Shown here: one piece after another, positions 6,956-22,637 of the stretch | Layout: each line of letters starts with the position of its first letter | Position numbering within the stretch: the stretch's first letter is position 1 | Sequence record: NC_013585.1 | Strand: one strand, 5' to 3' | Length of the DNA stretch: 24,186 nt | Position numbers and translations under genes: made by a program | The notes under the pieces: generated by a model | The model's input: the letters and a program-made list of their open reading frames with translations, nothing else | The model's database searches: none | Told to the model about the DNA's origin: nothing

Positions 6956-8980
6956 ATGGATAAGGAAACACTTAAGAGGATAGTTGCTGAAAAACTGAAG
7001 AAGGATGGAGATGGGAAAAATAATTCAGTGCCACCTCAAAACTCAAATAACTTATTACGTAATGATAAAAATTCTCCGGAAGTAAACAAAGGGTATAACC
7101 AAAATGTACCATTTGCACCAGTGAATTTAAGCACTGGTGCAAGAGAAAAATTGACTGGTGCAAATGGTACAAATCACTCTATATCTTCCAAAACTTCCGG
7201 AGAATTTAGTTCATCAGATGAGGAAGAAATTGAAGAAGGTGTTGAAATTAAAGATAATATAATTATAATAAAAACGAAAGATAAACATAAATTCGAAATA
7301 TACTACGGTTTCGCTGGAACAATAGAGGACAATACTAGAATTATAGACCTTAAAGTTCCTCAACTTCCGCAATGGAATTTTGTAGCTAAGAAGAAGGATG
7401 AAACTTTAAGCATACTGATTACTATTGACTTTTATCAAGCCGAAGGAAAGACAATATACCATATTAGGAATAAGAAAGAGATAATTGGGAAACTTTACGC
7501 GTTCAGAGGTCAAAGAAATATCTCCAAGAAACTAATCAACGATGCTCTTGATTTATGGTTAGAACGCATAGAACCAGAGAAATATATACAATGGACAGAC
7601 GTACGTGAGGTGGTGAAAAAGTATGAAGAGTGGGAAGAGATAAATCAAGACCCGCTTAACTTTTTCCTAAGTAGGGCTTCGGAGGTTATAGGGAATGAGA
7701 AACTTAAGGCTGCGGTTTTGCTTAGTATAGTATCATCACAACTTAGGAAGCTCTTCGGGATATATCGTGTTCACTTAATTTTAACTGGTAGTTCCGGTGC
7801 CGGGAAGTCATCTACCATAAAATCAATCTTAAAGATGTTCTACGAGATGAGTGATGGGATCCAAGATTGGATAGTACTTAACATAACAAGGATGACAAAG
7901 GAAAGTTTAGGTTATCTTGACGTTGGTAGTCTTGACGATAAAGTGTTATTCATTGAACAACTTGACAATATAGAAGGAGTAGGATATCTAAGGGAAGCTA
8001 TGAGTGAAGGAAGAATAACTACGTTAATCCCGGTGAAGACGGAAACCGGGGATATAAAGACAGAACAAAAGATTATTCCGGGGCAGCCGGCATTTATTAC
8101 AACAAACGTTACTGCAAACGTTGACCACCAAATTCTAAATAGGTCGATACAGCTTTACTTAAGCCCGGCAGAAGATGAGAAGCTAAAAACGAAGATTATA
8201 GAGACGATCTTAGAGAGAGAACCGGAGGAGGAACTTCAAAAACTCAAATTAATTACCTATGTTTGGCTTAAGACAAGGCCTATTTCCCCAAAGATGACCA
8301 AAGAAGTGAAAGATGAATTGATAAGACTGCTTAGCAAGTTCATTAACTTTAAGAACATTTACAGGGCTACAGAAATCACTAGGAATTTAGTTAGAGCAGC
8401 AGCTTCACTTTTCGGCCATGAAGAGATTCAGAAAGACGACGTTAATTTCGTAATGAGTTACTTCAAGAAGGATATAATCCTCACCACATTAGAGCTCTCA
8501 GAGAGAGACCTTAATCTGTTGAAGTGGCTTAGAGACCACGGATTTATTCAAGGGGAGAAAGATGACGAAACTATTGATGTTGGTACCGCAGAAATAGCTC
8601 AATACTTTAAAATGGCAACTCAAGAGGTTAAGAAAATTTTGGATTCGCTTTATGATAAAGGTTTATTGTGGAAAGCATATGATGGTAAGCGTTTCAGTTG
8701 GGCGTTGTCACACTACGGGCTTAAAGTGTTGGATGAACTGGAGAAAGAGGTAGGAGAGAAAGAGGAGGAAATACAGGCAGATATCGAAGTTGATGATATG
8801 TTGTTGAATTATGTCCGTTCTAAGCTGTTAGGAAAAGATGAAGTTACGGAAGAGGAGCTTCAAAACATTTTGGAAAAAACAGTTCAGGCTACTGATACGC
8901 AATCACAACAAATGTGGATAGATCTGTTAGAGAAAATGAGCGTGATAAAGAAGAGTGATGGGAAATGGAAAGTGCTTTGA
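6956..8980 (+). CDS. MCM-like AAA+ ATPase / Rep-type helicase with disordered N-terminus and C-terminal winged helices
   Basis: GNEKLKAAVLLS, Walker A GSSGAGKS, Walker B-like LFIEQLD, REAMSEG, FITTN sensor 1, ILNRS arginine finger, wHTH TAEIAQYF...KKILDSLYDKGLL; GGAGGTGG RBS and TAAATG coupling. Confidence 0.75.
   Translation: MDKETLKRIVAEKLKKDGDGKNNSVPPQNSNNLLRNDKNSPEVNKGYNQNVPFAPVNLSTGAREKLTGANGTNHSISSKTSGEFSSSDEEEIEEGVEIKDNIIIIKTKDKHKFEIYYGFAGTIEDNTRIIDLKVPQLPQWNFVAKKKDETLSILITIDFYQAEGKTIYHIRNKKEIIGKLYAFRGQRNISKKLINDALDLWLERIEPEKYIQWTDVREVVKKYEEWEEINQDPLNFFLSRASEVIGNEKLKAAVLLSIVSSQLRKLFGIYRVHLILTGSSGAGKSSTIKSILKMFYEMSDGIQDWIVLNITRMTKESLGYLDVGSLDDKVLFIEQLDNIEGVGYLREAMSEGRITTLIPVKTETGDIKTEQKIIPGQPAFITTNVTANVDHQILNRSIQLYLSPAEDEKLKTKIIETILEREPEEELQKLKLITYVWLKTRPISPKMTKEVKDELIRLLSKFINFKNIYRATEITRNLVRAAASLFGHEEIQKDDVNFVMSYFKKDIILTTLELSERDLNLLKWLRDHGFIQGEKDDETIDVGTAEIAQYFKMATQEVKKILDSLYDKGLLWKAYDGKRFSWALSHYGLKVLDELEKEVGEKEEEIQADIEVDDMLLNYVRSKLLGKDEVTEEELQNILEKTVQATDTQSQQMWIDLLEKMSVIKKSDGKWKVL
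7069..7207. repeat. Nested inverted repeats centred at 7138 inside the MCM-like gene
   Basis: 15-bp perfect IR 7069-7083/7193-7207; 18-bp perfect IR 7105-7122/7154-7171; 11-bp hairpin 7113-7123/7132-7142. Confidence 0.9.
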
Positions 8981-9324
8981 GTTTATTTACATCAATAGAG
9001 ACTCACGGTATCGTTGTAAGGAAGCATATAAATTGGGATTATGTAGGTATTGCCATTACGACTATAGGTACTATAGTCGTCTTCAAAGATACAGACTGGT
9101 CATATTACGGTGTTTATTCACCGTTTAAGGGTAGGTATCATATTCATATGCCTTTTACTGACATTGTAATATTTGATGATAAAAGTAAGGATGTGCTAAA
9201 CGAAGTATGGGGATGTCTTCATTTTGCAGAATGTTATATCGAAAAAGGGGTAGTGTATAGTATAAACAAGTTTAGAATGAGGAGTTTTATTCCGTTTGGA
9301 GTTCATACAACAACCAAACTTTAA
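8965..9324 (+). CDS. Hypothetical 119-aa protein
   Basis: Overlaps the end of the AAA+ gene; aromatic and beta-rich; no recognised family. Confidence 0.6.
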   Translation: MESALSLFTSIETHGIVVRKHINWDYVGIAITTIGTIVVFKDTDWSYYGVYSPFKGRYHIHMPFTDIVIFDDKSKDVLNEVWGCLHFAECYIEKGVVYSINKFRMRSFIPFGVHTTTKL

Positions 9325-9477
9325 TATTTTTATATCATAAGATAGGTACTACGTATTATGTTTTTTATAGTAATACCATGTCTAAAGATGAAAAATACAT
9401 AATCTTACTAACATTAGGGTAATACTACCATCTACATTAGTTATAGTTTAAAATAAAGAAGTGTATTAAAAAAATAG

Positions 9478-9786
9478 GTGGTTGCATTTAATTGGGTTAA
9501 AGAGAACCTAGTATTAGGTAGTATAGTGAGGTTAAAAAAACTTATTGAAGATGAGGATATAGAAATAGCAAAAAAGGAGGCTAGACGTTATAAACTGAAG
9601 CTCTGTGATTGGTCTAGAAATGAGTGGTGGTTTCATCAATGGCATAGTGTTTTCGAAATTGTAGAATTTGATTTACGGCGAGATCTTATAGATTCGGCGT
9701 ATGAGATGTTAGAGCAGGCTGAGTTTCAACTTTCAATAACTGAGCCAAGTTTTTCTAAGGTATCTGTTAAACAGAGTAAAGCCTGA
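9478..9786 (+). CDS. Hypothetical 102-aa protein
   Basis: Open frame after an AT-rich spacer; start uncertain; last 61 nt overlap the convergent wHTH gene. Confidence 0.5.
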   Translation: MVAFNWVKENLVLGSIVRLKKLIEDEDIEIAKKEARRYKLKLCDWSRNEWWFHQWHSVFEIVEFDLRRDLIDSAYEMLEQAEFQLSITEPSFSKVSVKQSKA

Positions 9787-10013
9787 GCTATTTGCTGACC
9801 TTTTTCTGTTAGATAAAGTCTTTTCTTTTTTATTCTGCCTTCTTGTTCTTCTTTTTCTTCTATAAAGCCATCATTAACTAATTCTTCTTTGGTTTTGTAA
9901 AATGTATTCGGAGCAAGAGTTGAGTATTTTAACGCTTCATTTACTGTGCATCCTTCGTGTAAGAAAATCGCTCTAATAACTAATGCGTGATTTGTAATGA
10001 AATTACTTTTCAT
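9726..10013 (-). CDS. MarR/PadR-like winged-helix protein, SSV1 F93-like
   Basis: NTFYKTKEELVNDGFIEE...KRLYLTEKGQQIA wHTH signature. Confidence 0.85.
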   Translation of the reverse strand: MKSNFITNHALVIRAIFLHEGCTVNEALKYSTLAPNTFYKTKEELVNDGFIEEKEEQEGRIKKKRLYLTEKGQQIAQALLCLTDTLEKLGSVIES

Positions 10014-10056
10014 AGTTTGTATTTTGTATGAGAACCTATTTAGGGATACGCGATAT

Positions 10057-10126
10057 TAGTACAAAGTTTGTACACAGTAATGCTTAAATACTACAAAGTA
10101 CAAACATTATACTGAGAAAGATGGAA
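10057..10126 (+). promoter_or_regulatory. Early (T6-like) promoter copy B (70-bp direct repeat)
   Basis: 66/70 identical to 4304-4373; contains the palindrome GTACAAA-G-TTTGTAC and tandem TACAAAG-TACAAAC after the TATA box. Confidence 0.85.
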
Positions 10127-10411
10127 GTTCCAGAAGAAAAGTTTAAAGAAAAAATAGTTAATCAAAATAGTATTTTTTTCGTTATAACAAATAGTAAAGA
10201 TTCAATGACAAACTATATACATTTAACTGTTGAAGAAAACGGTGAAAAAGTAATAAACGACAAGCGATTTATTGATGAGGGTATAGAGTTCGAAACAGTA
10301 ATACAGAAACTAGAGTTATTATATAAACTAAATGCTGATATGATATCTCAAGAAGAAATAAGGAAAGAACTATACGCAACGATAGCGAAGTTATTATCCT
10401 TTTTCATGTGA
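10121..10411 (+). CDS. SSV1 A100-like protein
   Basis: QNSIFFVIT...YIHL...[16 protein letters not shown] resembles A100; first gene of the T6-like operon. Confidence 0.8.
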
Positions 10412-10424
10412 TGGGTGGCGGAAA

Positions 10425-10604
10425 ATGAGAGTTATTACATTTAAAGCAGAAGAAGACCTATTAGAACTATTAGATAGATATGCAGCAAAACATGGGATAT
10501 ACAGAAGCGAAGCTATACGAAAAGCAATAGAAAAAATGGTAGAGGACGAAGTTAAAAAAGAAACTGTACCAACGGCAAAAATCGAAAAGGGGCAAAGGTT
10601 ATGA
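10425..10604 (+). CDS. 59-aa RHH/CopG protein, SSV1 C80-like (not in ORF track)
   Basis: Hand-translated [59 protein letters not shown]; GGGTGG RBS. Confidence 0.88.
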
Positions 10605-10753
10605 AAAGCAGAAAGGAAAGAATATATTGGTGCAAACTATGCGGGTTTACTGCGACTTCGATAGAAGAACTAGAATTCCATACCGAAATGGCCCATGAGA
10701 GTGATGACTCAATTCTTGATGACGATTGGGTTAGCGAAAGGGATGTGTGGTAA
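10601..10753 (+). CDS. 50-aa C2H2 zinc-finger protein with acidic tail (not in ORF track)
   Basis: Hand-translated [50 protein letters not shown]; ATGA overlap with the upstream stop. Confidence 0.8.
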
Positions 10754-10754
10754 A

Positions 10755-11024
10755 ATGTACAAATGCCCTATTTGCAACTATACGACTAACACAATATGGG
10801 GGTTAAAGAGTCACATTACAAAGAGTCATACTTTCGACAGATGCCCGGCATGCGGGCAGGCAATAAATGGGAAAAGTGACATACGGTTGAAGGAGGGACT
10901 ACTAACCCATCTATGGAATAACAAAAATGATCCACAGCACCGCCTTTGGTGGTTTTTGCTGAGGTCCTCACACAATAACCGAAAGACGTTTGACGATCAG
11001 ATAAGGGGATTGCTAAGTGTTTAA
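10755..11024 (+). CDS. A79-like double zinc-finger protein, paralog 1
   Basis: MYKCPIC...H...H then CPACG...H...H; ATG10755 directly follows the stop of the 50-aa gene. Confidence 0.85.
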   Translation: MYKCPICNYTTNTIWGLKSHITKSHTFDRCPACGQAINGKSDIRLKEGLLTHLWNNKNDPQHRLWWFLLRSSHNNRKTFDDQIRGLLSV

Positions 11025-11292
11025 GTGTCCAGTTTGTGAATTTGAGACTACTACGATCTTCAACATTAAGAGGCATGTGAGGATGCATGACTTTGACAGG
11101 TGCCCCGTTTGCGGGCAAAAACTAAATGGCAATAGCCCCCAACAGAGGAAACTCGCATTAACGTCCCATTGTGCCCATTTCGATGACGCTGACCACCTTT
11201 TTTGGTGGTGGTTAGTTAGGTCAAGTCACGATGGAAGTAACCCATTCCCTATGTATCTCAGAAAGCAACTGAAGAGGCGGTTAGAATGTTAG
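11017..11292 (+). CDS. A79-like double zinc-finger protein, paralog 2
   Basis: MFKCPVC...H..H, CPVCG; shares FDRCPxCGQ and WWxLxRSSH with paralog 1. Confidence 0.85.
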   Translation: MFKCPVCEFETTTIFNIKRHVRMHDFDRCPVCGQKLNGNSPQQRKLALTSHCAHFDDADHLFWWWLVRSSHDGSNPFPMYLRKQLKRRLEC

Positions 11293-11591
11293 ATATTATT
11301 ATTTCGTTTTACGGTTTTCAGTTTAATGATTTTACAACCACACTTGTAGGGTTAAGAATGGGAGCCAGAGAAGGGAATGTCTTAGCTAGGGCATTCACTA
11401 GAAGTTTGCCAATATTCGTTCTATACAAATTTGGTCTTTCTACCTTTCTTCTGTTGTTCCTATTACTTACTTCTGCAGACTGGATAATGGTTTTCCATTT
11501 CTCACCGATGTGGGTAATATACGGTGATACAGTTCTTGAAGGTGCTGTAACATGTTCAAACATTTACACAATATGGAGGGTGAAAAAATGA
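11286..11591 (+). CDS. SSV1 C102a-like membrane protein
   Basis: FYGFQFNDFTTTLVGL...EGN..AR...YKFGL matches the C102a family. Confidence 0.82.
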   Translation: MLDIIISFYGFQFNDFTTTLVGLRMGAREGNVLARAFTRSLPIFVLYKFGLSTFLLLFLLLTSADWIMVFHFSPMWVIYGDTVLEGAVTCSNIYTIWRVKK

Positions 11592-11965
11592 CGGAGTCAG
11601 GTACTAAAAAGTACCTGAGTAACCATAAGGGTATAATGATTCATGTATCATTGGAGGAATTAACGCGTTACCATTCTCTACGGCCGGAGCAGAAACGGTT
11701 AATACGGGCTTTCGTGAAAATGCTGATCTATTACCCCCAACTACTTGATGAAAGCTCCTATCTTTACAAATTGCTTACTGTAAAAGCTGTATCGCCTTAC
11801 GTCTGTCCCCTTTGCTTAACGCCGTTTCACTCTTTCGCCTCTCTCAAACAGCACATTCGTTACGCTGAGCATACAACGACATGCCCGGTGTGCAAAAAGC
11901 AGTTCCAAAAGACTGATACGTTATTAGACCATGTGTGTAAGAAGCACAATATTTGCGTGAGTTAA
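11588..11965 (+). CDS. B129-like C2H2 zinc-finger DNA-binding protein, copy 1
   Basis: KKYLSNHKGI...EQKRLIR...CPLC...HIRY.EH...CPVC...HVCKKHNICVS; GGAGGGTGA RBS before ATG11588. Confidence 0.92.
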   Translation: MTESGTKKYLSNHKGIMIHVSLEELTRYHSLRPEQKRLIRAFVKMLIYYPQLLDESSYLYKLLTVKAVSPYVCPLCLTPFHSFASLKQHIRYAEHTTTCPVCKKQFQKTDTLLDHVCKKHNICVS

Positions 11966-12001
11966 CCCTTTTTTAAAAACTCACTCTCTTTTTATTTAAT
12001 T

Positions 12002-12190
12002 ATGAGAAGGAAATGGGTCATTTTTTCGAGAGACTCTTACGGTGATATCGTTTATTTGAAAATAACAGAGAAGCAGTCTACTGCACGCAAATATTATGCT
12101 GAGTGTCAGCAATTTTTTGGGGAAATCTGCGTTATGGAATTAGGGGAGTTCTATACTCTTGATGAGGCTGAAGAATTAGACTCCTTTTAA
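12002..12190 (+). CDS. Hypothetical 62-aa protein
   Basis: Own TATA box (11971-11978) 31 nt upstream; leaderless ATG; acidic C-terminus. Confidence 0.7.
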   Translation: MRRKWVIFSRDSYGDIVYLKITEKQSTARKYYAECQQFFGEICVMELGEFYTLDEAEELDSF

Positions 12191-12213
12191 ACCCATTCTC
12201 TTTTTTATGCCTA

Positions 12214-13044
12214 ATGAAGAAGGAACTGTTAGTATTAGGGATTTTAAGCGTGTTCTTAATACCAATGTTAATGCCCCTAAGCAATGCATACGAAATATAC
12301 AATCCTCCCAGTCCTGGTGGCCCTACATTTTACCCGATTCTCATTGAGAATGACGCCGGTTATGCATATAACCTGACTAGGATAACTTTCGTATCAACAC
12401 TCGTGAACCTGACGGGGACATTTAAATATAACAGCAGTGAAGGAGGGACACAATATGTAGACTACTATATTGCTTTAGGGCAAATTGTACCTAACGAACA
12501 ATATGGGGCTTATTATATACAACCAGTTATTATATTTGCTGCTGATGGAAACGTATGGATTCTTGATTGGCAAGTTCAGGCATGGGGTAATAACTCCGGC
12601 AATCCTTATAAAGAGTATAGTACTTATGATACTATTACCGATGGTTCAGGTTCGTCAGCAAACCTTAACTGCCTCTTCAATTTAACAATTAAAGCAACAC
12701 TGAATAGCCAAGGCCAGATAACTAGTGCATGGGTCTATATTGCAAACGCTAAGACCGGTCAAGTATACTTTAGTCAGACTATAAACCTACAATATCTGAT
12801 ACCCGATAAACAAGTCTTCTTTGAGGTTGAAGACCCGCTATCTGGGAATGCACCGGCTAATTTTCCAGTTATTCCTTCAAGTAACTACATATTTGTTAAT
12901 GCATTAGCATCAAATAGCACAGCTATATTTAACGGACTTCCACTTTATAACGGTGTAGGATTTGTGATGGGACCACCAAAAGCAACGGCGTGTGCAATAC
13001 CAACGTTTGGTACTGGTACTCAAGGAGTCCTCTATTACGGGTGA
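12214..13044 (+). CDS. Secreted beta-rich (glyco)protein at the SSV1 A291 / T3 toxin locus
   Basis: Signal peptide MKKELLVLGILSVFLIPMLMPLSNA; several N-x-S/T sequons; no C-terminal anchor; own leaderless promoter. Confidence 0.75.
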   Translation: MKKELLVLGILSVFLIPMLMPLSNAYEIYNPPSPGGPTFYPILIENDAGYAYNLTRITFVSTLVNLTGTFKYNSSEGGTQYVDYYIALGQIVPNEQYGAYYIQPVIIFAADGNVWILDWQVQAWGNNSGNPYKEYSTYDTITDGSGSSANLNCLFNLTIKATLNSQGQITSAWVYIANAKTGQVYFSQTINLQYLIPDKQVFFEVEDPLSGNAPANFPVIPSSNYIFVNALASNSTAIFNGLPLYNGVGFVMGPPKATACAIPTFGTGTQGVLYYG

Positions 13045-13081
13045 ATAAATTTATATAAGCTAACATTTCTTTTTTACTCTA

Positions 13082-13402
13082 ATGAGAAAGATAATTTTAC
13101 CTATACTAATAATAGCACTAGTACTTTTCGGTATATCATTCTATCTACAATCAATAGACCATTCCACAAAGGTTATAGTAACTAAAAATATACAAACAAC
13201 TACTACAAATATTAATATAACTCAAGAAATCATAGAGCTAAATAAGTCTATTTCGCAACTAACCCCCTTTCCTGTTAACGAGAGTCCTACACAAACTTTA
13301 TCTACCACTTCACAAATATATGTTCAGTACGCCCCAGAAATTGTGATAGTGATATTGCTAATCCTTCTAGGACTTTTATACAAGAGACGTTCAAAGAAAT
13401 AG
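13082..13402 (+). CDS. Two-TM membrane protein with YVQYAPE motif (C124 position, candidate immunity protein)
   Basis: N-terminal signal anchor, Thr-rich linker, YVQYAPE followed by a TM helix and basic tail. Confidence 0.75.
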   Translation: MRKIILPILIIALVLFGISFYLQSIDHSTKVIVTKNIQTTTTNINITQEIIELNKSISQLTPFPVNESPTQTLSTTSQIYVQYAPEIVIVILLILLGLLYKRRSKK

Positions 13403-13437
13403 TCCCTTTTAAAACCCTTTCCTCTTTCTTCATCTAA

Positions 13438-13527
13438 ATGAAGTACCTATTAGTCTTCTTTATACTCTTCCTATCAATTTTTTCATCATCGTCTTTAGAG
13501 AAGTTCAGGAGGTTGGAAAATGCCTGA
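13438..13527 (+). CDS. 29-aa hydrophobic leader peptide (not in ORF track)
   Basis: MKYLLVFFILFLSIFSSSSLEKFRRLENA; ATG 31 nt after TTTTAAAA; overlaps the RBS and start of B129 copy 2. Confidence 0.45.
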   Translation: MKYLLVFFILFLSIFSSSSLEKFRRLENA

Positions 13528-13897
13528 TATCAAAAAATATCAGGTCAGTCACGGTAAAGAGAATAAAGGGGTATTCTTCCACCTTAGCAGTGAAGAATAC
13601 GAAATTTACAAGAATCTACCTGAAGAACAGAAGAGGGCCTTAAGGCTTCTCATAAAAACGTTAATAAGGAACCCTAACCTACTTAACGATAACTTAGTTA
13701 AATATGCTATGTTAAAATCAATAAATACATTCACTTGTCCTATCTGTTTAATGCCTTTCTCTTCCTATAAGGGTTTAATTGAACATATTAGGTATACTAC
13801 TCATAACCTTAAGTGTCGTTATTGCGGTAAAACATTCACGAGTCAAGACGCGTTATTAGACCATATTTGTAAAAAACATAATATTTGTGTGAGTTAG
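13520..13897 (+). CDS. B129-like zinc-finger protein, copy 2
   Basis: EQKRALR...CPIC...HIRY.TH...CRYC...HICKKHNICVS; AGGAGGT RBS. Confidence 0.9.
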   Translation: MPDIKKYQVSHGKENKGVFFHLSSEEYEIYKNLPEEQKRALRLLIKTLIRNPNLLNDNLVKYAMLKSINTFTCPICLMPFSSYKGLIEHIRYTTHNLKCRYCGKTFTSQDALLDHICKKHNICVS

Positions 13898-13949
13898 TAG
13901 TTTTTCTGCCATTTAAAAAACTACGGAATTCGGTAAAAACAGAACTGAA

Positions 13950-15053
13950 ATGAAGTCATTAATCTCTCTAGCCGTATTAGCCGTATTCGTAATATCCCTT
14001 ATACCAATGCCAATATCAATAATACCATCGGTATTAACAACGGCTCAAAGCAGTTCTGAATATGATTGGGCCATATCAGCATATAACTCTAACCTAGCCG
14101 GGTACAGCTCCTACGAAGTCTATTTTACTAATTTCTCTTACTTTAAACTAAACAATACTGGCTTTTATTCAATAGCCGAAATGTTTAACCTACCGTTAAA
14201 TGCTACGGGGACGTTCACAATTAATGGCAGTACTTATAACTTTAATGAAGTTATTGCCCAAATGGCTTTACTAGATTGCGGAGGAACATTTTGTCTAGAT
14301 GTTAACTTTATACTTATGGGCCCTTACGGACCTTTGTTGACACTTGTACCTCTAGAGTCTATATCATACAACCCACAAAACAATTTCATAATTACTACAT
14401 GTAGTAGTGGCAATACCTGGTATGCAACTTTCAGCACGGAGGGACAAAGCGAAAGTTTCCCAGATTTTCCAATATACCCTGGTGGTGTTATTACCAATAC
14501 TAAAGCTGATGGTTATCCAGTTACGATAAAATTTAATACTGTACCTAAGATAGCTGTGCCCTTTTATTATAATGGTTATATAACATATCCTGATGTCGCG
14601 TTTGAAGTTCATGCACCTTCTCAGACAAGCTTTGTAGATGCTAATCCTTATTTTGTGGTATTATTCAAACTATATATAAGCAATGAACTTTATAACTCAG
14701 AACTTTATAACTCAGCATGGAGTGGACAGAACTTAATATCTGCAGATTCAGCGTCTCTTAGTGACGACAATGGTACAATGATTGGTGTATGTGCACCTCC
14801 AAGCGATATTGCATGGGGTGCAGATGAATACATATATACCTATTCCTACCATAATGGTCTAGGTTACAGAGAGTATACATATTGGTTTGACGTCTCTTAT
14901 TGGTTGTTAGGAACTCAAAATGGGATTAAGGCTTTTGCTGGTCTTAACGGTCTTCCATTAAATGACCCTCAAAACGGTAATTTTGTTAATTTAATAACGA
15001 GCCCTCAGCAATACATTGCATTGCCTTCCTATACGTACTCTAGCACTGGATAA
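13950..15053 (+). CDS. Secreted beta-rich (glyco)protein, second T3-like slot
   Basis: N-terminal signal peptide; aromatic/Asn/Ser-rich; sequons; no anchor; same context as 12214-13044. Confidence 0.72.
   Translation: MKSLISLAVLAVFVISLIPMPISIIPSVLTTAQSSSEYDWAISAYNSNLAGYSSYEVYFTNFSYFKLNNTGFYSIAEMFNLPLNATGTFTINGSTYNFNEVIAQMALLDCGGTFCLDVNFILMGPYGPLLTLVPLESISYNPQNNFIITTCSSGNTWYATFSTEGQSESFPDFPIYPGGVITNTKADGYPVTIKFNTVPKIAVPFYYNGYITYPDVAFEVHAPSQTSFVDANPYFVVLFKLYISNELYNSELYNSAWSGQNLISADSASLSDDNGTMIGVCAPPSDIAWGADEYIYTYSYHNGLGYREYTYWFDVSYWLLGTQNGIKAFAGLNGLPLNDPQNGNFVNLITSPQQYIALPSYTYSSTG
14685..14715 (+). repeat. In-frame 15-bp tandem duplication (ELYNS x2)
   Basis: GAACTTTATAACTCA repeated twice exactly, followed by G. 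Confidence 0.9.
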
Positions 15054-15092
15054 CGAAAAATTTTATAAAGTTATAATGATTTTTTCCTTCTT

Positions 15093-15506
15093 ATGAAAAA
15101 GTTAAAAGTGTTCAGCATAGTTCTAACTGTTGTTTCAGCAATATTTTTAGGGTATTCTTTATATCTTCATCGGAATTACGCTAAAGTGAATGATAAAGCA
15201 ATAGCTATCGGCAACATGTATACTAAGTTGGATCCTACATATACGAAGTATTTTTCTTCCCCGCCCCCGTCCTCACCTTGGTACATTCAATATGCCCCGG
15301 ACTTAATTCTTCTAGCGGGGATTACAAGCGTCATTCTAGCTTTTTACCTATCCCCTGGGCTTAGAAACGGTTTCAAGACCTTGATCAACAAGTATCGTAA
15401 ACTAATAGATGATAAAAAAATTATGAAAATGATTAATGCAATGATTAATGTAATAAAGGAGTTTATATGGTTGTTAATAGACCATTTAAGTCCAATCTTG
15501 GAATAG
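15093..15506 (+). CDS. Two-TM membrane protein with YIQYAPD motif (paralog of 13082-13402)
   Basis: Signal anchor, SSPPPSSP linker, YIQYAPD followed by a TM helix; own TATA box at 15062. Confidence 0.75.
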   Translation: MKKLKVFSIVLTVVSAIFLGYSLYLHRNYAKVNDKAIAIGNMYTKLDPTYTKYFSSPPPSSPWYIQYAPDLILLAGITSVILAFYLSPGLRNGFKTLINKYRKLIDDKKIMKMINAMINVIKEFIWLLIDHLSPILE

Positions 15507-15541: not shown

Positions 15542-17962
15542 ATGAAAGGAAAACAACTTCTTTCAATATTAATCCTATCCATTTTTATCGCAACTACATT
15601 AAGCGGGATAACAAACATAGCAGCAGTAAGCAATGGTAAAGACACAGTATTCAATTTCTGGTTAAACAGTAGTGGGATCTCATCGGAAGGAGGTTCAGCA
15701 AAATACACTAGTCTAAATGGTCCTATAGGTTGTACCTCAGGGTTTCTGCTAACACAAACTACTGGACAAAGCGGTTACGTTATTCTGAATAACAGTATTA
15801 CGGCAACTGATGGAGTATATTCTCTTCAAGCAGTAATGGTTAATGCTTCAAACCCACCCGCCGACGAGATAGCTTTAGTCTTAGGGCCTTCATCACCGGT
15901 AAACTTCGATGGAGGAGCATGGCCGGGCTCAGTATCTTCTAACGGAGGTACAATGGTAGGTATAGAATTCTATTCAGGAACGGTTAACGGTTATTCAGGT
16001 CCTGCAGTATTCATATACACTTCTCAGGGGTTAGCAGCATGGCAGCAAATAGGTGCAGTGCCTAAACCTTGGCAAGCGTTTACTTTAGAAGTAGGAGTTG
16101 TTTCTAGCAAAATATGGGTAGCCTACTATATTGGGAATCAGTTAATAACTAATGTTACTGCTCAAGTTCCTCCAACATTCTCAACTTCTGAGGTTGAAAT
16201 CCATGCTTCAACAGGAGGTGCTTATGCGGGTTTCCTATTATTGCAAACCGGTTACTTCAGCAACTTAATGATAGCTACAATACAGAATGAGATATCAATG
16301 GGACTTGACTACTTACTCAATATGGGTGAGAATATTAACGGCTATGGTTATGTTCCGGAATACGCTTCACCTTCAGTATCATTTTTAGTTACTTACACTA
16401 ATGGTTCTAATGCGTATTATGTACCCGGTGCTCCTGCTAATAGTCCTTCTTTTTACGGTTCACCTGTTTACGGTACCCCTGAGCATACCGGTGAATATGT
16501 TGCTACTCCAGTTCCAGAAAGTTTCATCCCCGGTATTTCCGATAGTCTGGTTTCCGAGACTACTACTAAAGTTTCTGTGTCATATGATGCATATACGTAT
16601 GGTGATGAGGTAGTTAATTCTAGGACAGGCTATATTTACTATTATAAGGTGAATATTTTTGAGGCTAATGAGGTTGTAAATTACGGGAACCCTTCGCCGG
16701 GTGTATGGTCTGTTCAAGTTATAGTTAACGTTAATTCCACAGCGAATTACGTTCAGGATGTTCAACCTTACTTAGCTTCCGGGTTTGTGTTAAATCAGAT
16801 AAACAGCACAGCATGGGAATATACATGGTCCGGACAGTATTTCTATCCTACCTCACCTTCACCTTATGCACCGTCAAACGGTTTTGCTTCTTCTATAGCT
16901 TTACCTCAATATCCTAATGAATACTTCCATAGTTTCAGAATAACAATTAGACATGTGCAAGAAATGATGGATATGATTACTGAAGAATCGCCTTCATTAT
17001 CGCCGTTCCATAATTCGTTTTATGATACTGTTTATCATATACAGAGTGCCGTAGGCGTATGGGGTAAAAATGGAAATCAACCTGTAAGCTACTATGCATC
17101 ATTATTCGGCTATCCTTGGCAACCAGATTTGGGAATAAACTTCTACGACGCAATAAACAATAATTGGCCTACATATAAGGATGATACGTTTAATCTGTTC
17201 TTCCCTAACGCATATCCTTACAAGAGCGGGGTAGTTGTCATAAATGAGAATAACGGAGGGCAGATATGGGCAGAGATACTGAACTTTAGTATTATTGAGT
17301 TGAATGCAACGTATTCAATAGGATTCGGTGCAGGCTATTATGACCCGTTAGCATATGAAGAAGAAGGCTTATATTATACGGATGTAGGGCAATGGAGCAA
17401 TGCTTTATCAGCATGGGACGATGTATATAACTTCTATCAAGATAATCATGGGTTATATTATACTTTCGCTATTATCGATGACGGTAATTTATACTTAAAA
17501 CATTCAGAAGGTGCTAACGATACATTGCGTTATGCTGAAGCAGTCGCATTAGGTTCAAAGTTAGCAGGAAACGGATATATTTCATGGAGCCAAGTAATGC
17601 CGATCCTGAATACGTTTATTCAAACTCAATGGCAGGGGAACGGTTATGCTGTAATAAACGGACAAAATACATATGTTTTAGCTCCTACCAATATAGGCGG
17701 TTTCGAAACTGGATTTACAAATGATCCTATTTTTACTAGCTCTAGGCCTTCATATGTAACTTTTGCAGAACAGCTTTGGGGTGAATACGGAGGGACTTTA
17801 TCTGGAGGACTACCGGAAGAAGTAGAATGGCCGGGACTTATTATAGCAAACGCTGAAACTACAATAGTAAGCGTCCAAGCATTAGCCATGTTCTTGTACT
17901 ACTACTACGGGATACCTCTAAGTGTGTCTCTCAGCCCGTATAACGCTTATCTCATTCCATAA
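15542..17962 (+). CDS. 806-aa secreted protein: lectin/ConA-like N-terminal region plus alpha-toroid-like C-terminal region, no membrane anchor
   Basis: Signal peptide; many sequons; helical motifs resembling the 1231-aa tailspike; TTTATAAA 31 nt upstream. Domain calls are inferred. Confidence 0.7.
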   Translation: MKGKQLLSILILSIFIATTLSGITNIAAVSNGKDTVFNFWLNSSGISSEGGSAKYTSLNGPIGCTSGFLLTQTTGQSGYVILNNSITATDGVYSLQAVMVNASNPPADEIALVLGPSSPVNFDGGAWPGSVSSNGGTMVGIEFYSGTVNGYSGPAVFIYTSQGLAAWQQIGAVPKPWQAFTLEVGVVSSKIWVAYYIGNQLITNVTAQVPPTFSTSEVEIHASTGGAYAGFLLLQTGYFSNLMIATIQNEISMGLDYLLNMGENINGYGYVPEYASPSVSFLVTYTNGSNAYYVPGAPANSPSFYGSPVYGTPEHTGEYVATPVPESFIPGISDSLVSETTTKVSVSYDAYTYGDEVVNSRTGYIYYYKVNIFEANEVVNYGNPSPGVWSVQVIVNVNSTANYVQDVQPYLASGFVLNQINSTAWEYTWSGQYFYPTSPSPYAPSNGFASSIALPQYPNEYFHSFRITIRHVQEMMDMITEESPSLSPFHNSFYDTVYHIQSAVGVWGKNGNQPVSYYASLFGYPWQPDLGINFYDAINNNWPTYKDDTFNLFFPNAYPYKSGVVVINENNGGQIWAEILNFSIIELNATYSIGFGAGYYDPLAYEEEGLYYTDVGQWSNALSAWDDVYNFYQDNHGLYYTFAIIDDGNLYLKHSEGANDTLRYAEAVALGSKLAGNGYISWSQVMPILNTFIQTQWQGNGYAVINGQNTYVLAPTNIGGFETGFTNDPIFTSSRPSYVTFAEQLWGEYGGTLSGGLPEEVEWPGLIIANAETTIVSVQALAMFLYYYYGIPLSVSLSPYNAYLIP

Positions 17963-17993
17963 AAGATAAAATCTTTTTTTCTTTATTTCATTT

Positions 17994-18284
17994 ATGTCTT
18001 TAATTCAAAAAGCGTGGTTTAGGGCTTTAAGTTATGTAGGGATTTTCTTCTTATCATGGTTTCTAGATATAGGTTTAGGTATTGCTCTTTACGAAAAGAT
18101 ATTCTATTCTGGATTTAACACAATGCTTTACGTAGATTTCAGTGCTTCCGTCTACGCTTTATTGTTCTCTCTTTATTTCCTGAAGAAGAAACACTTCTTT
18201 TCTCTCATAGTCCCAATACTAAACTTCTTTATAGGTCTGGTCTTTCTAGCTTTTGAGTTATTAGTTTTAATAGGAGTAAGTTAG
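17994..18284 (+). CDS. 96-aa three-TM membrane protein
   Basis: Three hydrophobic segments with KKKH loop; follows the 806-aa gene. Confidence 0.72.
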   Translation: MSLIQKAWFRALSYVGIFFLSWFLDIGLGIALYEKIFYSGFNTMLYVDFSASVYALLFSLYFLKKKHFFSLIVPILNFFIGLVFLAFELLVLIGVS

Positions 18285-18318
18285 GCCCTTTTTAAATTCA
18301 CTTTCTTTTCTTTCTTCA

Positions 18319-18945
18319 ATGAAGTGGCCACTTCTGTTGTTAGTTATACCTATTTTCTTCACACTGTTTAGTTCAGCTTATAGTATCAGTATAGTCTCAA
18401 CGCCACCAGTAAACCCCCCTGCATATTCCTATTTCTATTTGGAATTCCAATTCAGTCCTACGAATAATACACCTCAACCATATGCCATCTTTGTAGGTAA
18501 TAGTCCTAATAACCTAACAGAGGTGGCGGAAGGTTACACATATCAAAACGGTACAGGATACGCAAGAGTTCCAGTTATTGATTCACAAATAGAATACGTA
18601 GACGTAGTTTGGGTGAATGTAAACTACACAATTTTCCAAATATTCCCACAGACTGTCCAAAATACTACTTCAGTCAATGTAACCAATGTACAGAATCAGG
18701 GCTTTACTTTTAATCTGCCTTCGTGGGTTTCATGGATAATAGGATCTGTATTAGTACTAATTTTCATGGGTTTGGGGTGGAAGTTTATGGGGCCTGCGGG
18801 TTTGGCAGTTTTCGGTGTAATTGCGATCTTTCTAGCAAGTTTCTTCGGTTTGATACCCTCTTACATCATTTACATCTTCGTTTTCATAGTTGCGGTAATT
18901 GGTGCTAAAGTCATTACGAAACAATTTGGAGGTGGTGAAGAATGA
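18319..18945 (+). CDS. Tail adaptor-type membrane protein (like SSV19 B210 / C-terminal part of SSV1 C792)
   Basis: Signal peptide; AIFVGNSPNNL..GYT..GTG..EYVDVVW; C-terminal LGWKFMGPAG TM hairpin ending GGGEE. Confidence 0.78.
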   Translation: MKWPLLLLVIPIFFTLFSSAYSISIVSTPPVNPPAYSYFYLEFQFSPTNNTPQPYAIFVGNSPNNLTEVAEGYTYQNGTGYARVPVIDSQIEYVDVVWVNVNYTIFQIFPQTVQNTTSVNVTNVQNQGFTFNLPSWVSWIIGSVLVLIFMGLGWKFMGPAGLAVFGVIAIFLASFFGLIPSYIIYIFVFIVAVIGAKVITKQFGGGEE

Positions 18946-21900
18946 AAGGTTACCTTTCCGCAATGCTTTTTATCATCATCATTATGGAGTTAGCTCTTAA
19001 TGTGTCTGCAGAAGTTTCTTTACCGCCCCTTTATGTTGAAGATGCCGTCAATGCACAAATACAACAGTTATGGTCTAAAAGCCCTACAGGGATAGACGCT
19101 TTCCATGAGGCACCTACAGTGAATCAAAGCTTTTGGATAGACGATAATTCCAAATTCTTAGAGTCCATAGCCCCATGGTGGCAAAGCTATAGCAGTTATA
19201 CAAGTGATATACTACAATTTGTAGAACAGGGTGATGTAAACGGGTTATTTATAAAGAGATTCGAATACCCGCTTAATCCTGTTCAGCCCGTCAATCTAGG
19301 AGGGTTGAGCGGGTATACCAACGGATTTTATGATATTGTTGGGAATCCATTAGACAACACAATGAGCATACGATCATACTATAACCCTACGTTAGCCATA
19401 ACCTACTTGTATGGTAATGTGGTTCAATATCCAAATGGAATACTGGTAAACATGGAAAGCGGTACTGAAAACCCTATAATTGATGGAGGTTTTGGAGGAC
19501 AGGGTGGGCAAAACCCACCATGGGAAACGATTACTCCTATAACGCTAACGAATGATTCGATAGTGCAGATAGCGAATTCAGCAAAGACTTACCTAAACTT
19601 GACGGGGGTTCCTCTTTTCGGTTCACCGTCAGAAGAACTGCAGTACAATTTACCTATAGTCAATATACTGCCTCATTACCTTACGCTTTACAACAAAGGT
19701 GGTGTATTAGGTAATTATAATTATAAACAACAATTCATAGAGTTTAACGTAACATTGTTCTTACAATCATCTACCATAAACAGGATATATCTATTATTTG
19801 TTTGGGAAAACTCAACTTCGGGAACCCTAGTTGAGACTGATATGCCTGTATACTTTGACGCTAACGGCCAATGGCATCAGGTCGTAGTTACTGTACCCTC
19901 AACAATGTTCCCCAAATATTGGAATCTGGGTAATCTAGCCACAGTCCCTCTATTGATAGGGATTGGACTAATGGTTCCGGGGGCTTCTTCTACACAAACA
20001 GGAAATAGTGGAGTGTCAGTAGGTTCTATTTCCACATTATACCCAACAACATATGGGCCTACATTTGTCGAAAAGGATTATGGGAGTTATGTTGTGTTTA
20101 ATGAGAGTTGGCGTAGTGATTATCTTAATACCACTTTTTGGCTTTCCTACATTTTAGGGCAGGGTGACGCAATCGAAGTGTTAGCCTCTGCACCGGTAAA
20201 CGGTTCATGGATTTATATCGGTTACAACGGATTGGCCACAATAGGGACAGGGTACACAATGATGGAAACCATTAATGGCACTATAGCAAACCATAACAAT
20301 GTTAACAACATTTCATGGACTTACTTAGGGGATAATTTCGGCAAATGGTTCCTGCTATCAACGAGATACGCTCCAAACTGGATAGGTGATTTTCAACTAT
20401 TGAATGTTTTCCCTATGGCGGGTACTAGTGATCCTTACGTTGATACGTTAGGTTATGCGGCTTATATGGGCGATCCCACTGAGGTTAGGAATACTCTCTA
20501 TTTCGGAAACTTTACCACACTTCCCGGTTACTTCCAGTGGGTGGAAATAGCTTTCGAAAATACTAACAATGGAGGGGTTTACGGCTTCTTCCTAATGCCG
20601 TCAGTTGATTATTTGGTTAATCCTAACGTTATCGTTAATGACTTGTTCCCCTCAAACTTTACGGGATATAGCCCCTCAACACTCCCTAATAATTACTGGA
20701 CTGGAGTATGGGGTGAGAACTATTATGAAGGCGAAATAATCTACGCTTTAGCGTTATTAGGGAAATATGGGAATTCCCAAGCATTGTCAATGGCTGAGCA
20801 GGCATGGAGTGCTTACTATAATCAGCTAAACACTTATAACGGTTCTACTTATACGTCTTCTCTAGCTAGATTCTTGATGGCCACAATAATCCTAGAGCAG
20901 GTGACAGGAAATACGCAATACTCTAACGCATATACAACAATAGCAAATTGGTTATTACAATGGCAAAATGAGAGTAAATATGCATACGTATATATTCCAA
21001 TGTGGTACCATAAGGATTTAGCAGTAAGCACAGTAAACGGTTATAATTCATACGGATACATCATAAACGAAACTTCTGGTATGGATGTAGGTACAGTGTT
21101 TAGCGGGACTTCAATAGGACTAAACTTCTTTGAGGATATTCCATTAAATACTTCGTATGGGATTTCTCTTATTACTAACGGGACAGGAAAACTTCCGTTT
21201 ACTTACCAAAATACGCTTAACGTTTCCGGTATATTGACTACCTACATTTATCTTAACGGCGGAGGTACGGCAACTACTGCAAACATTACCATCACTGTTC
21301 AGATAGCGTATGATGGCAATATTCTGCAGACAATAGGTTCAGCCACACTAACAGACGTTCCTGTTCAACCCGGTGGAAGTTCCGGATCACCGCCGTACTA
21401 TCCAGTAAAAATTACCGTTCCTGTTCTCACTACCGTAATTGCTCCACCATCATCTACGTTAGTCATAGGGTGGAATATTAAATCCTCAACGACCGTTTAC
21501 GCTTTGATAGATTCTACTAACGGCCCATCAAACATAACTATCCCGCTAAGTTGGAAGAATCCCTTCTACGGCGAATTTACAATCCCGCCAATTTATAACC
21601 CTAATCCCGGAGTACATGATTACCCACAACCATACTTCTTAGATGTTTCGGCAATGGGCGGACAGGCGTTGATGATGTTGTACACTGTAACTAAGAACCC
21701 AACCTACTTAACAGATGCCGAATTGGTAGAAAACGCAATTCATTATAGCGAAATTCCAACATCAACCTATGGTGTTTTAGGAGTTCCTAATGCACCTGTC
21801 ACCTATAGACTATGGGTATATGGTAACTACTCAACTGTGGACGCAGACTACTACACATACAAAGCTGAACTTGTAAGCGAATTTGCAGACGCTATAGGTA

Positions 21901-22637
21901 ACAACACATTAGCATCTTTAGCCATCAGCAGAGTATGGCAGAAGACTGAATATACTTATCCAACGTCATACATCTATTATGTGTCACTGTATGGTTCAGG
22001 TCTTCAGATGAATAGCGAGACACAACCATGGGGTGATGTAGCAACTGAAGATTATGTCCAAACTTGGGATCCAACTAACTTACAACTCTATTGGGCCTCT
22101 TTACCACAGGAGGACTGGATAATGAACCAGACATGGAATGGTACCGCATTAAAGGTATACCTCTACTCTTACTATGGAAATCAGTTTCAATTGCTGTTCC
22201 TAACTTCGACTGTGAAATTCAATATCATTATTAACGGTAATTATACCAACTATGGGGCTAACCATCAAATACTAGAAGTCTCAGGAAATGCTAAGGTAGG
22301 TACAAACGTTATAATCATAGTCCCTAACCCTACTAACCAGACTTCGATTAACACCGGAACCAACACGACTACGACTTCGCCCGTGAGTAAGATAGTCTAT
22401 TTCAACCTTACGCCACAAGAAGGGGAATTATTCGGTTTCATAGTGTACTTTACTGTTGTAGGATTTGCCTACCTATTTAGTAGGAATAAGACGATAACAA
22501 CGTTAGGTAGCTTAGTTGGCGTAGTAATTATTTGGGCTTTGGGATTATGGCCAATGTATATGTTATTCTTAGTAGGGGCGGTTTCCCTATTCATGATGTT
22601 CTATACTATTAGAGGAGGGGAGGAAAATGGGTACTAA
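18942..22637 (+). CDS. Large tailspike / host-attachment glycoprotein (betafusellovirus type) with putative glycoside-hydrolase-like domain
   Basis: 1231 aa; signal peptide; FWIDDNSKF motif (GH76-like DD); Thr-rich linker; two C-terminal TMs; ATGA overlap and GGAGGTGGTGA RBS. Confidence 0.85.
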   Translation: MKGYLSAMLFIIIIMELALNVSAEVSLPPLYVEDAVNAQIQQLWSKSPTGIDAFHEAPTVNQSFWIDDNSKFLESIAPWWQSYSSYTSDILQFVEQGDVNGLFIKRFEYPLNPVQPVNLGGLSGYTNGFYDIVGNPLDNTMSIRSYYNPTLAITYLYGNVVQYPNGILVNMESGTENPIIDGGFGGQGGQNPPWETITPITLTNDSIVQIANSAKTYLNLTGVPLFGSPSEELQYNLPIVNILPHYLTLYNKGGVLGNYNYKQQFIEFNVTLFLQSSTINRIYLLFVWENSTSGTLVETDMPVYFDANGQWHQVVVTVPSTMFPKYWNLGNLATVPLLIGIGLMVPGASSTQTGNSGVSVGSISTLYPTTYGPTFVEKDYGSYVVFNESWRSDYLNTTFWLSYILGQGDAIEVLASAPVNGSWIYIGYNGLATIGTGYTMMETINGTIANHNNVNNISWTYLGDNFGKWFLLSTRYAPNWIGDFQLLNVFPMAGTSDPYVDTLGYAAYMGDPTEVRNTLYFGNFTTLPGYFQWVEIAFENTNNGGVYGFFLMPSVDYLVNPNVIVNDLFPSNFTGYSPSTLPNNYWTGVWGENYYEGEIIYALALLGKYGNSQALSMAEQAWSAYYNQLNTYNGSTYTSSLARFLMATIILEQVTGNTQYSNAYTTIANWLLQWQNESKYAYVYIPMWYHKDLAVSTVNGYNSYGYIINETSGMDVGTVFSGTSIGLNFFEDIPLNTSYGISLITNGTGKLPFTYQNTLNVSGILTTYIYLNGGGTATTANITITVQIAYDGNILQTIGSATLTDVPVQPGGSSGSPPYYPVKITVPVLTTVIAPPSSTLVIGWNIKSSTTVYALIDSTNGPSNITIPLSWKNPFYGEFTIPPIYNPNPGVHDYPQPYFLDVSAMGGQALMMLYTVTKNPTYLTDAELVENAIHYSEIPTSTYGVLGVPNAPVTYRLWVYGNYSTVDADYYTYKAELVSEFADAIGNNTLASLAISRVWQKTEYTYPTSYIYYVSLYGSGLQMNSETQPWGDVATEDYVQTWDPTNLQLYWASLPQEDWIMNQTWNGTALKVYLYSYYGNQFQLLFLTSTVKFNIIINGNYTNYGANHQILEVSGNAKVGTNVIIIVPNPTNQTSINTGTNTTTTSPVSKIVYFNLTPQEGELFGFIVYFTVVGFAYLFSRNKTITTLGSLVGVVIIWALGLWPMYMLFLVGAVSLFMMFYTIRGGEENGY

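Follow-up and report, generated by a model that had tools for sequence, protein, structure and literature searches.

Two tandem secreted-protein modules and their recombination junctions in the genome of Acidianus spindle-shaped virus 1: a plausible double toxin slot

The window analysed here, 24,186 bp in length, represents the entire circular genome of the Betafusellovirus ASV1 (Acidianus spindle-shaped virus 1; NC_013585/FJ870917), for which Acidianus brierleyi is the recorded host species. The identification was based on a 100% match across the 5 kb which were queried, and on the equal length of 24,186 bp. The genome contains two tandem modules, each with a gene for a B129-type zinc finger, a gene for a protein with a signal peptide and a gene for a membrane protein with two helices. 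This arrangement had been recognized in a preliminary description of the DNA, and all six open reading frames (ORFs) named there were confirmed in position. Left out there were a small gene, C62, a promoter with a relic ORF of 29 codons between C106 and C125, and the TATA-like boxes in front of the start codons. In the following, the genes in the secreted slot (B276 and A367) will be designated gene 1, and the small membrane genes (C106 and A137) gene 2; module 1 consists of C137, C62, B276 and C106, and module 2 of C125, A367 and A137. Signal peptides and transmembrane segments were called from hydropathy, not with a dedicated signal peptide predictor. The features of the modules are located on the + strand.

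Module 1 begins with C137 (11552-11965), which encodes a C2H2 zinc finger of the B129 type. Its true start is likely at position 11588 (Met13); when read from there, the protein has 125 amino acids, a length like that of its homologues. A TATA-like box at 11970-11980 precedes C62 (12002-12190), which is situated between C137 and B276 and encodes a small soluble protein (phrog_19807) similar to B85 of SSV-RH, a Sulfolobus spindle-shaped virus (SSV); a gene of this type, encoding 61 amino acids, is also found between the zinc-finger gene and the A367-type gene of the metagenomic fusellovirus L003. A T3-like promoter box, CTTTTAAACCC...CTCTTTTTT (12184-12213; repeat families D1 and D3), is present about 25 nt 5' of the ATG of B276 (12214-13044). 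B276, a candidate secreted glycoprotein, is gene 1 of this module and occupies the toxin slot. It is followed by a Tx-like promoter, AATAAATTTATATAAG (13045-13081), and by gene 2, C106 (13082-13402), which encodes a protein of the C124/C108 family with two transmembrane segments and carries the codons for YVQYAPE at 13319-13339. The modules are joined by a junction scar (13403-13527), consisting of a VP4-type promoter and the relic ORF (13438-13527), which overlaps the start of C125.

Module 2 has the same order. C125 (13520-13897) encodes the second B129-type zinc finger, a paralogue of C137. The T3-like promoter CATTTAAAAAAC (13905-13949) precedes A367 (13950-15053), gene 1 in the toxin slot of this module, which encodes a candidate secreted glycoprotein with a predicted beta-sandwich, and the Tx-like promoter GAAAAATTTTATAAAG (15054-15092) precedes gene 2, A137 (15093-15506), another member of the C124/C108 family with two transmembrane segments and with the codons for YIQYAPD at 15282-15302. 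For every gene of the region, a TATA-like box is present some 25-35 nt 5' of the start codon. Such spacing fits leaderless transcripts which would be initiated separately, as mapped in SSV1, where the T3 box A and the transcript start are located directly before the ATG of A291. The A/T-rich boxes at 13045-13081 and 15054-15092 resemble the published consensus of the Tx promoter, AAAATTTTTTAAAC; the conservation of this promoter, and conserved motifs among the "C124 homologues", were already noted by Goodman and Stedman (2018, PMC6080066).

B276 and A367 each possess a single hydrophobic, signal-like segment at the N-terminus (residues 5-23 and 7-25, respectively), which aligns with the signal peptide of A291, and according to hydropathy no further transmembrane segment. 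The numbers of N-x-S/T sequons are six in B276 and five in A367. The two proteins had been described as highly divergent, which is correct: no sequence similarity between them was detected (E = 0.32), and in a profile-profile comparison a probability of 65% was obtained, limited to the signal peptide and the first strands. Homologues were found in hot-spring metagenomes and genomes of Sulfolobales, amounting to 29 proteins for B276 and 12 for A367. The ratios of nonsynonymous to synonymous substitution rates (dN/dS) were 0.29-0.56 for B276 and 0.34-0.48 for A367, i.e., gene 1 evolves fast, but below neutrality. Two details of the sequences may be added. A367 contains a perfect tandem duplication of 15 nt (14685-14714), giving ELYNS-ELYNS at residues ~246-255, which its homologues do not have. 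The C-terminus of the B276 family, P-T-F...G-T-Q-G-V-x-Y-Y-W, is conserved (alignment A1), with low model confidence in this part; the ASV1 protein ends with YYG, not YYW.

In the metagenomic fuselloviruses L003-L005 the gene order is zinc finger, C62-like gene, A367-type gene, small transmembrane gene and VP4, and a B276-type gene is located in the canonical slot of the Metallosphaera sedula provirus L007 and of the metagenomic viruses L016 and L017. Each type thus occurs alone between a B129 homologue and VP4 in relatives and proviruses; B276 and A367 are therefore alleles of one hypervariable slot, that of the T3 transcript of SSV1, and their assignment to the toxin slot in the preliminary description was borne out. 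That both are secreted proteins of the T3 slot can be stated with high confidence.

Structure prediction yielded all-beta sandwiches for both proteins, with a mean predicted local distance difference test (pLDDT) value of 79.4 and a predicted template modelling score (pTM) of 0.79 for A367, and with values of 70.9 and 0.72, respectively, for B276. The best match of B276 in the PDB was scytalidoglutamic peptidase, an eqolisin (MEROPS family G1; 2IFW/2IFR/1S2B), with E = 5e-7 to 1e-6 and template modelling scores (TM) of 0.64-0.70 by target length, the common architecture being a beta-sandwich of two seven-stranded sheets and the pLDDT of the model only 70.9. Neprosin was next (E = 1e-4); lectins and glucanases reached TM values of <=0.31. 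For A367, the best matches were neprosin (E = 6e-4) and the 1,3-1,4-beta-glucanase of F. succinogenes (3AXD/3AXE/1MVE; E ~1e-3, TM 0.37-0.45 by target length). A beta-sandwich, "hydrolase-like" fold was described for a291, b310 and orf299, and a291 was matched to 3AXD with TM 0.453, the same PDB entry as that matched by A367 (Abshier et al., PMC13431529). The models of B276 and A367 thus belong to the fold class of the T3-slot toxins.

Previous experiments with other fuselloviruses give weight to the slot. The statement of the preliminary description that this locus of SSVs encodes a secreted toxin agrees with the literature (PMC8628083, PMC13431529): B310 of SSV9 and p29 of SSV11 are sufficient to produce an inhibitory supernatant upon ectopic expression (DeWerff 2021, PMC8628083), and a291 of SSV1 was shown with knock-outs to be needed for halos and to be dispensable for replication and virions (Abshier 2026, PMC13431529). 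With the known T3/Tx modules, i.e., B310-C108, p29-p30 and A291-C124, the modules of ASV1 share the slot between a B129 homologue and VP4, a promoter of their own, a similar Sec signal peptide, a protein of 250-370 amino acids without other transmembrane segments, and an adjacent small transmembrane protein with the signatures SIDH and PPWY-x-N/Q-L/Y-W/A-P. They differ in that ASV1 has two full tandem modules, a second copy of the zinc finger and a remnant of the VP4 5' end, in the lack of detectable sequence similarity of the secreted proteins to the tested toxin types, and in the host, which is an Acidianus.

The preferred interpretation is that ASV1 carries two complete tandem T3/Tx modules between the core gene B129 and the end-filament gene, and that their secreted proteins are antagonistic; its probability is estimated at roughly 0.55. 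Each module provides a promoter-like box with a leaderless-looking gene for a probably N-glycosylated beta-sandwich protein with a Sec signal (B276 or A367), and then a second promoter-like box with C106 or A137, whose two-helix product is assigned to the C124/C108 family. B276 and A367 would be released and act as antagonistic proteins like B310 of SSV9, p29 of SSV11 and A291 of SSV1, because position, signal peptide, size and fold class agree; among the functions considered this is the most likely one. The structure itself is real and more than a chance arrangement. Both modules are intact, and dN/dS is below neutrality for the gene 1 types and for the ecto-modules of gene 2. A double toxin-slot module is plausible; for actual toxicity of B276 and A367, the odds would be about even.

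Several results weigh against this interpretation. The occupant of the slot is not always toxic, e.g., p30 of SSV13 did not inhibit uninfected cells (PMC8628083). None of the toxins tested by experiment is homologous in sequence to B276 or A367. A search with the B276 profile among 1.84 billion representatives gave 15 matches, all from its own family, and linked it neither to G1 peptidases nor to any other type of SSV toxin. The fold matches of A367 are weak (TM 0.26-0.45), and a fold search with A367 in BFVD gave no match with a fusellovirus toxin and nothing convincing. The Pfam family PF01828 (Peptidase_A4, G1) was matched far below threshold, by one of 19 B276 homologues (E = 0.35; 10.7 bits, cut-off 22.3 bits). 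With tblastn, B276 and A367 matched ASV1 alone among 50,697 virus records; comparison of both families with A291, B252 and C247 by hhalign gave similarity of the signal peptides only; Pfam, PHROGs and PDB sequence searches with B276, A367 and the family profiles revealed no significant family; and a scan of genome contigs with the B276 profile, for which the search patterns were too strict, returned two degraded loci only. In comparisons with SSV9 only the B252 piece was used. In the record of SSV9/SSV-K1 (NC_005361; L012, 11915-12125) the N-terminal extension which DeWerff et al. give for B310 does not form a single open frame with B252.

The folds would also be compatible with proteins which are not toxins. 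B276 and A367 could be lectin-like proteins of the cell surface or associated with virions, with a role in adsorption, egress, or masking or destruction of receptors; C106 and A137 would then be membrane docks, and two copies would be present because the end-filament module is expanded. The fold falls in the class of concanavalin-like lectins and glucanases, the genes adjoin the end-filament genes, whose fibre module is a variant one in ASV1, an involvement of the slot genes in virion assembly or egress was predicted earlier (PMC6080066), and DeWerff et al. (PMC8628083) suggest that the small genes may have their function in connection with the particle. However, SSV1 without a291, or without a291 and c124, replicates with normal virions (PMC13431529), B310 and p29 work as proteins of cell-free supernatants (PMC8628083), and the model of B276 is much closer to glutamic peptidases than to lectins by the TM values given above. 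Such a function at the surface or in the virion is considered rather unlikely.

In the B276 family Q103 and Q122 are invariant and E206 is nearly so; Q122 and E206 are separated by 84 residues, compared to 83 for Q53 and E136 of eqolisin, where the comparison refers to sequence positions only. The sub-threshold Peptidase_A4 match in one homologue was colinear along 141 residues. Eqolisins are secreted, are active below pH 4 and possess a Q53/E136 dyad (PMC6154417). Q122/E206 are thus putative catalytic residues of B276. The model suggests, with less certainty than the slot assignment, that B276 could be an acid-active hydrolase similar to glutamic peptidases, working at the external pH of the host; membership in the G1 peptidases is not established. 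Common to the glutamic peptidases (eqolisins, G1, 2IFW/1S2B; neprosin, G3) and the ASV1 proteins would be the two-sheet beta-sandwich, with neprosin matched by both, secretion together with a short N-terminal segment resembling a pre- or prosequence, and an acid activity of eqolisins which suits the habitat of the ASV1 host. In contrast to true members, B276 remains below the threshold of PF01828 and has no match by sequence in the PDB, and the match of A367 is weak.

An eqolisin-like signature, "WVG...LQAG", was also considered in the A291 family (L020) and was rejected, since neither Pfam nor PDB searches lend it support and conservation of the downstream Glu does not extend to A291. In the A291 homologue of L020 (7698-8606, - strand; 34% identity), FLQAGVD takes the place of PLEAYVE in A291; this site, variable between Q and E, recalls the active sites of glutamic peptidases, which these searches do not support.

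C106 and A137 share the topology that had been described for them: each has two hydrophobic segments (residues 4-22 and 81-99 in C106, which contains three sequons), with Y[VI]QYAP[ED] at the start of the second. A137 matched phrog_20661 (E = 4e-8). Direct comparison of C106 and A137 by BLASTP gave E = 0.003, and an exact run of four residues was found in 31% of shuffles; the motif alone is thus weak evidence, and homology of the two proteins rests on the family alignment (A3) and on the mosaics described below. The alignment places both in one modular family with C124 of SSV1 and C108 of SSV9. The general plan is a basic N-terminus, a first transmembrane segment ending with YL[HQK]SID, a variable ecto-loop which is often rich in Thr, Pro or sequons, then PPWY-x-[QN]-[YL]-[AW]-P-[ED], a second transmembrane segment and a variable basic tail. 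Like other members, C106 and A137 follow gene 1, have an A/T-rich promoter of the Tx type and carry the juxtamembrane signatures. B74/C82 of SSV8 and one SSV in IMG/VR contain the C-terminal module of the family only; a scan of IMG/VR for WY[VI]QYAP[ED] retrieved ASV1 and one SSV only. For the ecto-module of gene 2, dN/dS was 0.48-0.82.

In the preliminary description the YxQYAP sequence had been regarded as the conserved anchor motif of a polymorphic toxin system. It is part of the membrane proteins, not of the secreted ones, and it marks a recombination junction: in C106 as well as in A137 the relatedness of the DNA switches exactly at the codons of the motif. The N-terminal part of C106 is 98.7% identical to its homologue in L002 and the C-terminal part 57%, which is background; with the gene of L003 the values are reversed (59.6% and 95.5%), and with that of L016 they are 70% and 100%, respectively. 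A137 is 89% identical in its N-terminal part to the genes of L003 and L013, with the C-terminal part at background level (~61% in both), and shows 60.5% and 82.7% identity for the N- and C-terminal parts, respectively, to a gene for 104 amino acids on the chromosome of A. brierleyi (L006). The boundaries of the BLAST segments, 13344/13319 in C106 and 15301 in A137, fall on the motif itself. Thus, this conserved juxtamembrane element doubles as a crossover point for homologous recombination, at which parts of the proteins are swapped. The signal-anchor and the ecto-loop stay with their gene 1, while the second transmembrane segment and the tail are shuffled across W/Y-x-Q/N-Y/L-A/W-P-E. The co-inheritance of ecto-module and gene 1, which is seen in few independent events, may reflect functional coupling or mere adjacency.

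According to the preliminary description, each module would be a toxin with a cognate surface-immunity protein, C106 against B276 and A137 against A367, and with a zinc finger as regulator. The location of gene 2 directly downstream of gene 1, the inheritance of its ecto-module together with the gene 1 type and the fast evolution of both genes agree with such a model, as do chromosomal arrays with extra or orphan copies of gene 2, which recall orphan immunity arrays. Published tests speak against it: C108 of SSV9 alone gave no protection and left growth cost and halo of B310 unaltered (PMC8628083), insertion into or deletion of c124 of SSV1 had no phenotype (PMC13431529), and protection of cells in which the toxin gene was expressed did not depend on gene 2 (PMC8628083). 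Since C124, C108, C106 and A137 are one family, the negative immunity tests of C108 and C124 bear on all of them. Moreover, co-occurrence of both genes is not obligatory. In the metagenomic fuselloviruses L017/L018 the zinc-finger gene and the B276-type gene are followed by VP4 after a gap of 43 nt, without gene 2 (L017, 2274-6027), and a Stygiolobus chromosome contains a zinc-finger gene and an A367-type gene, again without gene 2. A cognate immunity function of C106 and A137 is thus improbable, and the model as a whole is quite unlikely. Rather than being classical immunity proteins, C106 and A137 more likely work at the membrane in concert with their cognate secreted protein or with the budding machinery.

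The modules bear a certain likeness to polymorphic toxin-immunity cassettes. Arrays of such cassettes include the orphan arrays of the contact-dependent inhibition (CDI)/Rhs type in bacteria and predicted archaeal systems. As in these, a hypervariable secreted gene is adjacent to a small gene, conserved flanks allow exchange of cassettes, and chromosomal arrays contain degraded and orphan copies. Unlike these, the secreted proteins of ASV1 carry a signal peptide in place of a long conserved domain for delivery, the relatives of the adjacent gene failed in immunity tests, and the two genes do not always occur together. Precedents for self-immunity are the killer-yeast preprotoxin and halocin C8 (cited in DeWerff 2021, PMC8628083), where the producer needs nothing but the toxin gene for its protection; this would fit a secreted and processed protein with an unstructured N-terminal segment, such as residues 26-46 of B276, although no homology to B276 or A367 exists.

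The zinc-finger proteins C137 and C125 are true paralogues, as had been claimed (46% identity, E = 1e-37), and both exceed the cut-off of 27 bits of the Pfam family PF22034 (B129_C2H2-zf), with 49.4 bits for C137 (E = 5e-13) and 39.8 bits for C125. The DNA of C137 is 72-78% identical to the B129 genes of many SSVs, and dN/dS of C137 and its homologue in L003 was 0.05, which indicates strong purifying selection. The conserved 3' end of C137 forms the left homology arm of module 1; the 3' part of C125 is 96.5% identical to the chromosomal copy of A. brierleyi. A role of the zinc fingers as cassette-specific regulators is unsupported. A zinc-finger gene or a fragment of it does precede each chromosomal cassette, as the model of toxin, immunity protein and regulator would have it, but such fragments are accounted for by crossovers in the conserved 3' end. 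Furthermore, B129 is a core gene of fuselloviruses, is located upstream of the T3 promoter in SSV1 and is under purifying selection, unlike the cassette, and the second copy in ASV1 is explained by the recombination which joined the two modules.

The traces of this recombination are found in the junction scar. The relic ORF, MKYLLVFFILFLSIFSSS..., has 29 codons with a hydrophobic N-terminus like that of a signal peptide, and is preceded by a VP4-type promoter box (repeat D1). Positions 13319-13444 are 86.5% identical to L003, where they comprise the 3' end of gene 2, the VP4 promoter and the sequence up to the ATG of VP4; the same junction is 86% identical in the chromosome of A. brierleyi. 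Since the scar matches the VP4 5' end of L003, module 1 appears to end in the start of a VP4-type gene, which is fused upstream of a second, divergent B129 gene. The VP4-type 5' end of one genome would have been joined illegitimately to the region upstream of the zinc finger of another genome with a different allele, which would have left the relic and the second zinc finger as passenger. The second zinc finger would seem to be a side product of this illegitimate joining.

The chromosome of A. brierleyi (L006, CP029289.2; locus 7500-11905, at about 2.453-2.458 Mb) contains a virus-free array with two slots and the same junction. Slot 1 consists of a zinc-finger fragment, a split and frameshifted gene of the SSV8 C247/SSV10 B298 type and a transmembrane gene; in slot 2 the zinc-finger region is cut down to a C-terminal fragment of 62 amino acids, which is followed by a homologue of A367, with the first 45 residues identical and 48% identity overall, and by two transmembrane genes. 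Three paralogues of gene 2 are thus present in total. Because the junction is shared, the two-slot architecture predates the split between ASV1 and the chromosomal copy, with replacement of alleles in both slots. The array may be a domesticated or decaying remnant. Other chromosomes of Sulfolobales contain degraded cassettes or runs of gene 2 paralogues. In Sulfolobus sp. S-194 (CP035730; L013, 3464-6270) a zinc-finger fragment, a gene for a protein with three transmembrane segments, a frameshifted gene of the C247 type and three different genes of the C124 family in tandem were observed; in one of the latter, the N-module of A137 is joined to a C-module of the C124 type.

The scar and the host copies raise the possibility that one of the modules in ASV1 is merely a non-functional remainder of recombination which is carried neutrally; the relic at 13403-13527 points to an origin by illegitimate recombination, and chromosomal copies are often frameshifted. 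Yet all six ORFs of ASV1 are intact with a promoter-like box before each, dN/dS is <1 for both gene 1 types and both ecto-modules of gene 2, and the two-slot junction was in place before ASV1 and the host copy diverged, with alleles exchanged in both slots afterwards. A neutral remainder is thus very unlikely.

A more far-reaching proposal would combine the predicted fold with the pattern of exchange. The hypervariable "toxins" of fuselloviruses, including B276 and perhaps A367, could be secreted, acid-active hydrolases like glutamic peptidases, directed against the surface of competitor cells, with two of them stacked in ASV1; the ecto-loop of the neighbouring protein would serve as cognate tether or inhibitor. 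The cassettes would be exchanged via three conserved arms, one formed by the 3' end of B129 together with promoter and signal peptide, another by the juxtamembrane motif and the third by the 5' end of VP4, and hosts would keep virus-free arrays as a defensive or offensive arsenal. This proposal is speculative and, as a whole, has a low probability.

The genome, the paralogy of the zinc fingers, the toxin slot and the C124 motifs are already published. New are the doubling of the module and the scar which it left, the role of the motif as crossover site, the array without virus in the host and the resemblance of the B276 fold to glutamic peptidases. Virus-encoded secreted toxins were proposed as the basis of a mutualism between chronic fuselloviruses and their hosts. 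With the locus described here the toxin slot gains two new alleles, from another host genus, and a stack of two modules, with a recombination scar that can still be read, is seen for the first time. How cassettes are exchanged can be stated in concrete terms, namely by crossover exactly at the juxtamembrane motif and within the conserved flanks; the exchange extends to a virus-free host array. The fold similar to glutamic peptidases, which would be suited to pH 2-3, provides an enzymatic hypothesis that is testable.

On both sides of the modules the genome shows further peculiarities. To the right, a promoter box and C806 (15507-17962), the first gene of a variant end-filament module, form the boundary. 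The end-filament region of ASV1 (15542-22637) is split and expanded, consisting of C806, which is secreted and lacks a C-terminal anchor, A96 with two transmembrane segments, B208 and A1231; B208 matches the C-terminal anchor of VP4 only, and related viruses have a single VP4 of ~800 amino acids. Just upstream of the modules, A109 and B91 (10695-11292) are another tandem pair of paralogous zinc-finger genes, which makes two local duplications within one transcript region.

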